From Phaeosaccion multiseriatum (taxonomy: Eukaryota; Protista; Ochrophyta, other classes): a DNA stretch of 64,000 nucleotides. Location: positions 2,914,001 to 2,978,000 of the forward strand of contig OZ218956.1 of the NCBI GenBank assembly GCA_965112735.1. Direction: 5' to 3'. Made by a program: the position numbers and the translations under genes. Below the pieces are notes generated by a model that was given only the letters and a program-made list of their open reading frames with translations, ran no database searches and was not told the DNA's origin. This document shows, in pieces, positions 40,095 through 59,282 of the stretch (within the stretch, counting starts at the first letter, position 1; every line of letters begins with the position of its first letter).

Positions 40095-43000
40095 TCAGTG
40101 CTTTGCTGCTGCTGCTGCTGCCGAGGCGCTGAGGACAGCTTGGTGCCTCCGGAGCTCTTCGTCCACAGTCACGCATAGCGTCTCACGCGAGTACGTGTGG
40201 CGAGTAAAGTAGACACCGTCGGGAACCTCGTTGTGCCGAACCTTTTGCACGAAGCTCTGCGCGTCGCACGTCACCACAAAGCACTTCCCCGCCACTGCCG
40301 AGAGCGGCACAAAGTCCACCTCCTTGCCAAGTACAAGCTCGCGAGAGCCTGCCGACCGGCCCCCACCGCTACTCCGCAGGGCAGAGGCGGCAGCGGAGGA
40401 GGCGGACTGCACAGAAGAGACATCGGAGGAGTCGGAGCCTGAAGGGAGGAGGCAGGGAGTAGGGCGGAGGGGGTGAGGGTGGGGGAGAGGGGGGGGGGGG
40501 GGTGCAGAGGGAAGGGCAAGGTCAAGGGCGCACGAGCAAGAACCTCCGCAAGTCTGCTCCCTTCTCTTTTGTCCCCGAATTGAAACTGAGAACCGAAACC
40601 ACGCACCACGCCTTTTGTCACTCACCCACTCACCCACTCACCCACTCACCCACCCACCCACCCACCCACCCACCCACTAATTCACTCACTCACTCACTCA
40701 CTCACTCCCCCTTATCTTATCTCTCTACAATAATCAGTCGATATGCTTACCTGCATCCTTGATGTCCCTCCGTATGTCAGCCTTAGTGTAGAACCTCTGC
40801 ACCGTGATCCAGCCCCGTTTGCTGCCATCCTCCAGCACGCCACGCACGCGAGCAGGGACAGGAGGTGCTCCGTCCTGCAAGGCCACCGCCAGACGAACAA
40901 CGAAGGGAGGGAGGGAGGGAGGGAGGGAGGGAGGGAAGGAGGGAGGGAGGGTGGGGAGGGAGAGGGAAGGAGGGAGGGAGGGAGGGAGGGAGGGAGGGAG
41001 GTAGGGAGGAAGGGAGAGGGAGGGAGGGAGGAAGGAAGGAAGGAAGGGAGGGAGGGAGGGAGAGATGGAGGGAAAGCCGTTAGAATGTGTTCACAGACAC
41101 CTCCTCTCCTCGATACTCTTATGCTCTTTGTCTCCCAGGGCACCCAGGGCACCCAGGGCAGGCAGGTAGGCAGGCAGACAGGCAGGCAGGCAGGCAGGCA
41201 GGCAGGCAGGCAGGCAGGCAGGCAGGCAGGCAGGCAGGCAGGTAGGCGAGTGGGTTAAGATTGTCGCTGAGACTGCCAGTGTGTGTGTGTGTGTGTGTGT
41301 GTCGTGTCCTGTGTCTCTCTCTGAGTGTGCCCCTCTCTCCTCTCCACGCACCTCCCACCGCACGAGAGCGCATGTATCCGATCGATCGGTGGCGCTCGAA
41401 AGATCCACCGTTACGGCCGCGCCCCCTCGGGAAGAAAGACCCTTGTCCGACGACGACGACGACGACGACAACGCTGCGGACTCGACAGTGTGCTTGCATG
41501 GGGAGGAGGTGGAGGGGAGGGGAGGGGACAGATTGGAGAGATGGGAGGGGGGGGGGGGAGGCATACACAGAGACCGCAGAGGGAGGGAGAGAGGGCGGAG
41601 AGGAGGGCTGTGAGAGAGCAAGGAGGGAAGAGATGGGGGCTCTTCTTTCGAGGACGATGACTTTCCCTTCACAAAGCCATAATGGGGTTGCTGGCGCCGT
41701 CCTTAGTATACTTGGCCCCCCTGCCCTTGCCTTAAGTAATAACATGTCGATATCGGGCTTGTCCTGTCCTGTCCGTACCTTGACGCGAGGGAACACTTTG
41801 AGGGGCTGCACGGGTCCATCCCAGCTCTCTAAAATGGCCACACTGGAGGGAGGGAGGGAGGGAGGAAGGGAGGGAGGGAGGGAGGGAGGGAGGAGGGAGG
41901 GAGGGAGGGAGGGAGGAAGAAGGAAGAGGAGAGGGCAAGGACCAGATCGTTTTGGCAGTCATGTAGTCAGCTAGCCAGAAAGGAAGGAGGAAAGGAAAGG
42001 AGGAAGGAAGGAAGGAAGGAAGGAAGGAAGGAAGGCAGGAAGGCAGGAAGGAAGGAAGGAAGGAAGGAAGGAAAGAAGGACCTAAGCCGCACACATCATC
42101 TCAGGACACACTATGCATGCATACGCATGCATACGGCTTCTGGTGCGGGTGTGTGGCCCAACCAAAGCCCTCCCCCCCTTCCCTACGGCCCCACGGTCAC
42201 AAGCACAATTCTCGCTCCTCACTCGTCCACACACAACCCCAACGCAACGCAACGCATCGTAACGCATCGTAGCGCTCTCACCAATCGCTGCAGAACATCT
42301 TGATGCGAGCGTGTTTGGAACACACTGGGATGGGCGGGACTCCCTCCGGCAGAGGCAGCGGGGGACAGAGCGTGTACGTGCCGAGGAAGACACTCTTCGA
42401 GGGAGGAGGTGGGCCGTCCTTGCGCTGCCCCTTCCCCTGCCCCTGTCCTGGGACGGTGCTGGAGAGAAACGGCCCTCCTCCCGGTAGAGCCGCCGCTGCT
42501 GCATCGGGGAAGGTGGCCTCGAGTTGGAACACGGTATGGCCCACTCTGGAGTTTGGTGATGGGAGGACGGAGGAGGAGGAGGAGGAGGAGGAGAAGGAGG
42601 AGGAGGAGGGAGGAGGAGGAGGAGGAGGAGGAGGAGGAGGAGGAGGAGGAGGAGGAGGAGGAGGAGGAGGAGGAGGAGGAGGAGGAGGAGGAGGAGGAGG
42701 AGGAGGAGGAGGAGGAGGAGGAGGAGGAGGAGGAGGAGGAGGAGGAGGAGGAGGAGGAGGAGGAGGAGGAGGAGGAGGAGGAGGAGGAGGAGGAGGAGGA
42801 GGAGGAGGAGGAGGAGGAGGAGGAGGAGGAGGAGGAGGAGGAGGAGGAGGAGGAGGAGGAGGAGGAGGAGGAGGAGGAGGAGGAGGAGGAGGAGGAGGAG
42901 GAGGAGGAGGAGGAGGAGGAGGAGGAGGAGGAGGAGGAGGAGGAGGAGGAGGAGGAGGAGGAGGAGGAGGAGGAGGAGGAGGAGGAGGAGGAGCACCAGC

Positions 43001-58000: not shown

Positions 58001-59282
58001 CGGTGTGTGGAGTGGAGGCGTGCAGATGACAATGACGAGTCAGGGGTGAGATGAGACAGACGGAAGGACGGAAGGACGGAAGGACGGAAGGACGGAAGGG
58101 CGGCATAGACAGGGGAGGAAGAGACAGCACAGCACCGCAGAACATGGCGTGGAACGTTAGGAGCAGGAGTAAGGCGGATGTAGGCGTGGGCCGACACAGA
58201 GAGAAAGTGGCCGTAACCGTACACGGTGAGGTGAGAGGGAGGCCTGTGCTCAGAGCACTCAAGTCGAGATCAACCCCTGCTGCCTGCTGCCTGCATAGAA
58301 TGAACAGGGAGTAGGAGAGCATTCCTGCGTCCTCCTCCCCCCGCTGGCCCACCCGCTCACCTGATTGCACAGCTCCCTGATCTGCAGGAACTTGTCTCTC
58401 CGCAATGCCAGGTACTCTCGGTGTCTTCGAATGGTCGGCGTGACGTGTTCGGCCTGCAGGGGCGGGGGGCGGGGGGCGGGGGGCGGACGGACGGGAAGTG
58501 TTGGGGGGAAGAAGGACCAGAGGCGTCAGGACGATTCGTTTGTCCAGAAAGAGAAACAGGGATGGAGGTGCCGCCATCTCGGGCAGCATGCACACCAAGA
58601 CACACGCGCGCGCGCACCTGAGCCCACTTCCTCTTCACGCTCGGAGGAACGAACTCCCACTCCCCAGCGAGCTCTTCTCTGTGTCTGTGGTAGTGGAACT
58701 CGTGGTACATTTGACCCTCCGTAGCCGCCTGAGTAGTGCACGCAAATGGAGGAAACGCGCGCAGGGACGAGGTGTTGGAGGCGGGGGGGGGGGGCATTTA
58801 CTCTCTCATCTTCAACTGTGATCTTCAACCGTCACTGTGCTCATCAGGTCTCCACGTCTCCCTCTTCTCCGACCAACTTTCAAACTCCTCTCTCAGGTGC
58901 GCACCATGAGACCTTCCAGGGCCTGGTCGTGCAGGCCCCTTTCCAACATGAGGACGGTAGTCTTGGCCTTAAAGAGCTCCTCCTCCATCTCGTGCAGCGC
59001 GTCGAGCCTCTCCTCGGCATAGTCCGCCTGCTTTCCCGCTTCAGTGAACGGTAGCGTCGCCTTGAGGGACTCCCAAAACCCCATCTCGTAGTAGGGCTCC
59101 TCGCTGCCATCGTCATCACCATCACTGCCGTCTTCACTGCTATCACTCTCGCTGTCGCTGCTATCGCTACCGCTTCCGCTGCTATCATCGTCGCTGTCAC
59201 TGTCGTCGCTGCTATCGTCGCTCTCGCTCTCCCTCGTCCTCCCCTCCTCGGCCTCCGCCGAGAAGGCGGCTGCTCTCCCCAT
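40095..59282 (-). CDS. Giant ~32-exon protein: acidic N-terminus, Cys/His-rich region, 7 IQ motifs, degenerate EF-hand pair, Cys cluster, two C2H2 zinc fingers, C-terminal BAH-like domain
   Basis: All 31 junctions chain in phase from ATG 59282 to TGA 40095. IQ examples: AAVRIQKMYR, AGQIQKLIRGHWAR, ANTIQRRWRGVLGR, ARQIQRVYRGHRGR, ATLVQAAFRG. EF-like: YDKKRRGMCTKAQF, YYDGDGSCNWFKF. C2H2: CMHAGC...HEQEH and CPVQGC...HLRVGH. BAH-like: PARVRGVLED...WITVQRFY...RELVLGKEVDFVPLSAVAGKCFVV...YFTRHTY. Confidence 0.75.
42570..42993. repeat. Long (GGA)n tract, ~420 bp, inside a GC-AG intron
   Basis: Directly visible and nearly uninterrupted. Confidence 0.95.
44948..45270. repeat. (GGGGA)n/(GGGAA)n pentamer tract, pyrimidine-rich on the transcribed strand, at an intron 3' end
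   Basis: Directly visible. Confidence 0.95.
47709..47872. repeat. 10-bp minisatellite (GGATGGCAGT)n; also at ~43566-43657 and ~52177-52271
   Basis: The same unit occurs in three separate introns. Confidence 0.9.
55786..56170. repeat. (GGGA)n tract; many similar tracts throughout the window
   Basis: Directly visible; reads (TCCC)n before an acceptor on the minus-strand transcript. Confidence 0.95.

Follow-up and report, generated by a model that had tools for sequence, protein, structure and literature searches.

A predicted Phaeosaccion multiseriatum gene with an IQ-motif array, two C2H2-type patterns and a divergent BAH-like C-terminus

Does one gene in the stramenopile alga Phaeosaccion multiseriatum join calmodulin-binding IQ repeats to C2H2 zinc fingers and a BAH-like chromatin reader? 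Such a gene, with EF-hands in addition, had been claimed in a preliminary description of a 64,000-nucleotide stretch of its genome (hereafter the window; contig 7, positions 2914001-2978000, of a 67-Mb, 22-contig assembly that was also used for genome-wide searches). We found at this locus, on the minus strand, a chain of in-frame exons, an array of IQ motifs and two zinc-finger patterns, and we hold the reading of the whole as a single gene of about 30 exons, with the IQ array, two C2H2-type patterns and a divergent BAH-like C-terminus, to be evenly poised between right and wrong.

The gene model was built from a codon log-odds table, for which long, clean open frames in the window served as training data, and a splice-aware dynamic programme that accepted GT and, later, also GC donors together with AG acceptors. 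The programme started at ATG 59282 and was given no constraint on its end point; the window (GC content ~60%) is rich in intronic simple repeats, and simple repeats were masked in the final model. The best minus-strand path led from this ATG to the stop codon at 40095-40097 and, after exon 4 had been set to its long form and exons 12 and 13 added by hand, gave a final model of 29 exons; it has 5,247 nt and 1,748 codons, none of them an internal stop. Two optional exons (45511-45413 and 44944-44723), which divide the sole 1.65-kb intron into three ordinary introns, bring the model to 31 exons and 1,855 residues; they were kept as optional because their coding scores are negative. The chain described before and its stop codon were reproduced independently in this way, while its count of 32 exons was matched only roughly. 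Poly-Glu, Cys-Val-repeat and poly-Leu 'exons' from the first runs of the programme were discarded as artefacts.

The chain scored 396 bits, compared to 129 bits for the antisense strand of the same stretch and 161 bits for the antisense strand of another 19.8-kb stretch. Among the 28 acceptors, 24 are the first AG after a run of 67 nt or more, often above 198 nt, that is free of AG (control median, 4 nt); each of the remaining four is found 3-9 nt downstream of a first AG of this kind. The 3' ends of all 28 gaps are C-rich, the GC skew ranging from -0.07 to -0.96, and contain 0-1 AG in the last 60 nt; 20 of the gaps are G-rich at their start. Exon length is divisible by three in 17 of the 29 exons (P = 0.0045), and exons 7-9 are three phase-2 exons in a row, with one IQ motif each in exons 8 and 9. 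The introns are GT-AG except for two GC-AG introns. The GC donors (43228-43229 and 41729-41730, minus strand) stand in good GC-donor context, and the donors of exons 1 and 2 share the unusual weak form GTGCGC.

The exons of the model are listed below. Family, homology and fold searches used single exon pieces as queries, and scores against the Pfam IQ family (PF00612) are given for the exon piece and, where available, for the genome-wide search.

Exon 1, 58905..59282 (minus): ATG 59282; an acidic stretch rich in Ser and Asp, then a helical segment; coding score 53.9 bits; weak donor GTGCGC. Translation could alternatively begin upstream, at the in-frame ATG 59450 (coding score of 59450-59283, -1.4).
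Exon 2, 58618..58728 (minus): on the programme's path; acceptor after a 70-nt AG-free tract.
Exon 3, 58361..58453 (minus): acceptor score 4.8; donor GTGAGC, score 6.3.
Exon 4, 57861..57973 (minus): long form chosen by hand, the programme taking only the last 23 nt; the donor is common to both forms and the phase is kept.
Exon 5, 57128..57317 (minus): on the programme's path; no Pfam match.
Exon 6, 56468..56778 (minus): on the programme's path; nothing in Pfam or the ESM Atlas.
Exon 7, 55660..55764 (minus): phase 2 to 2; acceptor after a 523-nt AG-free pyrimidine tract.
Exon 8, 55351..55440 (minus): IQ motif 55392-55442; PF00612 19.7 bits (piece), 18.8 (genome).
Exon 9, 55047..55142 (minus): IQ motif 55088-55132; PF00612 18.0 bits (piece), 17.5 (genome); phase fits exon 8 directly.
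Exon 10, 54350..54461 (minus): complete IQ motif 54419-54451 matching the strict pattern; PF00612 18.6 bits (piece).
Exon 11, 53831..54037 (minus): complete IQ motif 53897-53929; PF00612 19.3 bits (piece), 21.0 (genome, above the cut-off); the last three codons open a further IQ motif.
Exon 12, 53264..53389 (minus): placed by hand, skipped by the programme; PF00612 17.4 bits (piece); IQ-type motif 53276-53308, preceded by the junction-spanning IQ motif 53839-53831 (exon 11) plus 53389-53366 (exon 12).
Exon 13, 52566..52609 (minus): 44 nt; placed by hand, bridging phase 0 to phase 2; weakly supported.
Exon 14, 51973..52113 (minus): end of the IQ array; acceptor preceded by 208 nt free of AG; words resembling a branch point at -49 and -61.
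Exon 15, 51410..51682 (minus): the first of the two 'EF-hands' claimed before, degenerate; no Pfam match, no PS00018 loop.
Exon 16, 50370..50495 (minus): the second 'EF-hand', degenerate; no Pfam match; a loose 12-residue loop pattern (50384-50419) only.
Exon 17, 49221..49425 (minus): Cys/His-rich module; only a weak EGF_integrin match (E 0.03); acceptor after a 650-nt AG-free tract.
Exon 18, 48332..49120 (minus): 263 codons, Gln-rich and of low complexity, the product probably disordered; coding score 49.8 bits; no credible Pfam match.
Exon 19, 48029..48111 (minus): with an ATG 6 nt upstream, could instead be a first exon.
Exon 20, 47495..47657 (minus): doubtful; donor score -0.7; acceptor after a ACTGCCATCC repeat cluster.
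Exon 21, 46716..46859 (minus): coding score 19.5 bits; 333-nt AG-free tract ahead of the acceptor.
Exon 22, 45879..46073 (minus): strong donor (score 6.8), then a (GTGA)n array.
Optional exon, 45413..45511 (minus): 99 nt, phase 0 to 0, basic, stop-free; GTAAGA donor; coding score -0.9.
Optional exon, 44723..44944 (minus): 222 nt, phase 0 to 0, Ser/Pro/Arg-rich; acceptor score 7.0 after a 368-nt AG-free tract; coding score -8.7.
Exon 23, 44138..44224 (minus): C-x4-C-x12-H of zinc-finger pattern 1 (44138-44200); no Pfam match of the piece alone.
Exon 24, 43663..43763 (minus): the first two codons (43758-43763) give the last His of finger 1.
Exon 25, 43230..43349 (minus): first part of zinc-finger pattern 2 (43230-43294); GC donor.
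Exon 26, 42282..42545 (minus): 42536-42545 give the last His of finger 2; acceptor after a 500-nt AG-free tract.
Exon 27, 41731..41842 (minus): possible start of the BAH-like region; on the programme's path; GC donor; no Pfam match.
Exon 28, 40751..40874 (minus): resembles mid-BAH by eye; no BAH match at E up to 10; nothing in the PDB.
Exon 29, 40095..40438 (minus): Ser-rich loop, BAH-like C-terminal half (profile match 40179-40355) and stop (40095-40097), followed by an A-rich 3' flank.

The IQ array was confirmed and is the most firmly shown part of the gene. Five exon pieces matched PF00612 (a basic amphipathic segment of ~21 residues with the pattern [FILV]Qxxx[RK]Gxxx[RK]) at 17.4-19.7 bits, and in a six-frame search of the genome, in which the 150 best IQ matches were considered, the same five sites scored 17.5-21.0 bits, one of them (21.0) above the cut-off of 20.3 bits. 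The array thus holds five of the genome's 150 best IQ matches within 2.2 kb on one strand, where ~0.0024 would be expected (P ~7e-16), and its motifs have the features that define the family. The strict pattern [FILVM]Qxxx[RK]Gxxx[RK] occurred four times in the model, compared to 0.04 in shuffles. One strict motif exists only after exons 11 and 12 are joined, and a looser IQ-like motif spans the junction between exons 13 and 14; two IQ motifs formed only across junctions had been described before, and both were recovered in our independently built model. About eight IQ motifs, ~30 residues apart, are predicted to form a basic helical array at approximately residues 435-670 and to bind calmodulin; complete IQxxxRGxxxR motifs are of the type favouring calcium-free calmodulin. 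Elsewhere in the genome, a 1,708-codon open frame on contig 15 (1916344-1919169, plus strand) is an intronless giant IQ array, with ~20 of the genome's best IQ matches at a regular spacing of ~177 nt.

The EF-hands claimed for exons 15 and 16 should be dropped. In the 12-residue loop of an EF-hand (PS00018; PF13499 and related families), residues 1, 3, 5 and 12 are calcium ligands and residue 6 is Gly. No PS00018 loop was found in any sense frame of 40095-59282, exons 15 and 16 had no Pfam match at E up to 1, and the candidate loops in these exons lack Gly6 and ligands at 3, 5 or 12. The two exons would encode at most a degenerate helix-loop-helix pair, apparently unable to bind calcium.

Two occurrences of the pattern C-x2-4-C-x12-13-H-x3-5-H were found in the model, compared to a mean of 0.02 in shuffled proteins. 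As had been noted before, and as was reproduced here, each is completed only over a junction, between exons 23 and 24 and between exons 25 and 26; the dynamic programme picked both junctions blind to the motif, the second with a good GC donor. Classical C2H2 fingers combine the spacing C-x2-4-C-x12-H-x3-5-H with a hydrophobic core. Finger 1 (C-x4-C-x12-H-x3-H) has this spacing only in the spliced model, and finger 2 (C-x4-C-x13-H-x4-H) has the Phe and Leu core positions and a non-canonical x13. No exon piece matched PF00096, and the exon 25 piece gave weak matches only (C2H2_ASCIZ, E 0.042; first finger of ZNF451, E 0.078). We accept the finger junctions and the pattern, and the fingers are designated C2H2-type by their spacing only. 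They resemble classical C2H2 fingers (PF00096, PS00028) in the spacing of finger 1 and the Phe/Leu core of finger 2, but differ in being isolated, ~50 residues apart and without a TGEKP-type linker, in the one additional residue of finger 2, and in matching only atypical families (ASCIZ, ZNF451), and these weakly. The intron between the exons of finger 2 (intron 25) contains a pure trinucleotide repeat of ~400 nt (~42620-43020), which adjoins a (GGCA)n array and reads as poly-Glu, poly-Ser, poly-Leu or poly-Pro depending on frame and strand.

At the C-terminus, a resemblance to BAH domains is measurable, though weak and well short of family membership. In a scan of 24,736 Pfam families, the last exon matched PF01426 (gathering score 30.8 bits, profile of 121 positions) with 12.9 bits (E 0.1), its residues 28-86 aligning to profile positions 57-114. 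BAH was one of just two families matched by this exon, and the alignment is colinear and falls in the expected half of the profile. Of the 'BAH-like' region claimed before, this half-profile match is the part that could be measured; it lies below threshold, and the rest resembles BAH by eye. Since the domain, if real, is divided among exons 27-29, scanning exon pieces is a weaker test than scanning the spliced protein would be. A genome-wide BAH search returned three candidate exons only and did not flag this locus; its first pass is therefore insensitive to split domains. We infer that the C-terminus may adopt the distorted beta-barrel of a BAH fold. Its likeness to known BAH readers (ORC1, Sir3, PBRM1/RSC, BAHD1 and plant EBS/SHL) lies in the alignment of the last exon to positions 57-114 and, by eye, also in the two preceding exons; it differs from them in its sub-threshold score, in a 30-residue Ser-rich insert and in that no typical partner domain (PHD, bromo, AAA or SANT) is present in the gene. 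The genome's canonical BAH exon, on contig 8, scored 29.3 bits in the genome-wide search. It belongs to a canonical BAH domain that is split over three exons and has a His/Gln-rich low-complexity stretch ahead of it (contig 8, 357000-360500, local positions 1296-2077, plus strand). A word search with the middle exon of this domain found no relatives, and BLASTP gave no alignment between the canonical contig 8 exon and the BAH-like pieces of the gene studied here.

Are these parts encoded by one gene? We lean slightly towards a single minus-strand gene of ~30 exons, running from 59282 to 40095 and encoding a protein of ~1,750-1,855 residues, with the IQ part and the zinc-finger/BAH part predicted to lie on a single transcript. 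Since each gap has the look of an intron, no other reading is as economical. The window contains 18 exact copies of the intron-type word ACTGCCATCC, all on the minus strand (chance expectation, 0.13); they fall at 43566-43655, 47761-47870 and 52177-52357, in three predicted introns of the finger, middle and IQ parts respectively, mostly upstream of acceptors. The only A-rich stretch of the 3'-flank type that is neither a repeat nor a purine run lies past 40095, with none internally. The finger exons look internal: a (GTGA)n array comes after the strong donor of exon 22, and the acceptor of exon 23 is strong. This array (45790-45878, minus strand) starts exactly at the exon 22 donor, turns into (CTGA)n further on and is in effect a tandem 5' splice-site consensus. 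Two copies of another word, GTATCACCAAC, are found at 53160-53200 (minus strand), ~70-100 nt past the exon 12 donor.

Several results weigh against the single-gene reading with its proposed domains, and some of them concern the chain itself. The model is ab initio, from genome sequence alone; exons 4, 13 and 20 and the two optional exons are weak or placed by hand; coding scores are low (0.2-10 bits) in the exons of the fingers and the BAH-like part; and the high score of the chain is no proof of one gene, because the dynamic programme also chains through neighbouring genes. It scored 650 bits over window positions 1-19800, which probably hold more than one gene, indicating that chaining cannot separate genes. 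Two or more tandem minus-strand genes may have been merged, one with the IQ array, which would begin at 59282 and stop at some point from 53.2 to 45.4 kb, and one of zinc-finger/BAH-like type ending at 40095; we consider this arrangement doubtful but to be taken seriously. A second gene could start at ATG 48117, just ahead of exon 19, or at ATG 45511, which opens the basic optional exon, and coding scores fall in the finger/BAH part; however, the stop reached on reading through exon 18 (~48056) would be overlapped by a gene with its start at 48117, and exon 23 requires an upstream partner exon. An in-frame stop past exon 12 (53249-53251) adjoins a patch of lower GC content (52.9-53.1 kb), but this patch holds the genome's intron-type repeat words. 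Upstream of each candidate break is a strong donor, and downstream of it an AG-free, acceptor-type pyrimidine tract; an internal A-rich stretch of the 3'-flank type is absent.

The C-terminus adds further points to the same side. Its BAH match is far under the gathering score, the other two BAH-like pieces (exons 27 and 28) had no BAH match at E up to 10, a PDB sequence search with two BAH-like pieces returned chance matches only (C1q and virus coat proteins), and an AlphaFold prediction of the last exon alone had a predicted local distance difference test score (pLDDT) of 44, too low for use. Among 1.84 billion representative proteins, phmmer found no relative of the last exon and no copy of the gene itself; its two matches, one to a repeat protein of 1,837 residues and one to a Rib-repeat protein, were rejected as repeat-amplified false positives. 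Neither the last exon nor exon 6 had a usable match in the ESM Atlas, two metagenome DNA scans (exon 1 and the last exon) were blank, and neither exon 1 nor the last exon has a paralogue in the genome. The absence of relatives holds for the C-terminal exon only, because the length window of the word search is blind to full-length kin of short exons. The gene is a lineage-restricted, ab initio model.

These results bear on another explanation, that the gene is real but encodes an IQ-array scaffold of cytoskeletal or flagellar type, like ASPM or plant IQD, with a long disordered tail, its finger patterns and BAH-like end being degenerate or due to chance and without a chromatin role. IQ is the sole family near or above its curated threshold, the fingers escaped PF00096 with one of them spaced non-canonically, the BAH match reached only E 0.1 at a C-terminus conserved in no relative found, and the genome has other large IQ arrays, such as the contig 15 frame. 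Like myosin lever arms, ASPM and plant IQD/IQ67 proteins, the product would carry, on a basic helix, tandem IQ motifs at intervals of ~25-30 residues, and several of these motifs have the complete IQxxxRGxxxR form. In contrast to these proteins, the Pfam scans detected a CH, ASH, motor or IQ67 domain in none of the exons, and the finger/BAH-like module has no counterpart in them. Two C2H2-spaced patterns are hard to attribute to chance, given the shuffle mean, and so is a last exon for which BAH, colinear with the right half of the profile, was one of just two families; we judge a scaffold of this kind to be unlikely.

The gene is flanked on both sides by plus-strand genes, a PHO4-type transporter and an ABC-F-type ATPase:
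PHO4-family phosphate transporter, 37442-39157 (plus): single 571-codon open frame, 398.7 bits (Pfam); the match covers residues 34-550 against a 350-position profile, so that the frame holds either a long insert within the protein or an in-frame intron left unspliced.
ABC-F-type ATPase gene, 59783-61631 (plus): multi-exon, with ABC_tran and ABC_tran_Xtn; head-to-head with the IQ gene, the two ATGs lying ~500 nt apart.

What might the protein of the single-gene model do? From the N-terminus, its order would be an acidic region, the IQ array, the degenerate helix-loop-helix pair, the Cys/His-rich module, a disordered Gln-rich middle, the two C2H2-type patterns and the BAH-like end, an arrangement that we regard as having an even chance of being correct. 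The product would probably be a large nuclear scaffold with finger and BAH-like C-terminal modules. The IQ helix may carry several calmodulins or calmodulin-like light chains, the four complete IQxxxRGxxxR motifs being suited to the calcium-free form, and calcium-driven release or re-seating of these light chains could alter the access of the finger/BAH module to DNA or nucleosomes. In its strongest form, as a calcium-responsive, calmodulin-gated chromatin reader in which ~8 loaded IQ motifs control the access of C2H2 and BAH modules on the same polypeptide to nucleosomes, we consider this proposal decidedly improbable.

CAMTA/SR proteins, large nuclear calmodulin-binding transcription activators, are the known precedent for direct coupling of calmodulin to transcription. 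They have a CG-1 DNA-binding domain, a TIG domain, ankyrin repeats and just 2-3 IQ motifs at the C-terminal end. As in CAMTA, IQ motifs would be placed here on the same chain as a module directed at nucleic acid or chromatin. The CG-1, TIG and ankyrin families that define CAMTA were found in none of the Pfam exon scans, and the array here differs in having ~8 IQ motifs and in lying upstream of the fingers. No IQ-BAH protein was described in the literature searched. With CAMTA as functional precedent, a role as a Ca2+/calmodulin-to-chromatin adaptor is a reasonable hypothesis. At present the locus is of value as a target for study rather than as an established system. If the single gene and the BAH fold are both true, it would represent a second, independently built link from calmodulin to the genome after CAMTA, and a system in a stramenopile alga in which chromatin, rather than a DNA motif, would be read.

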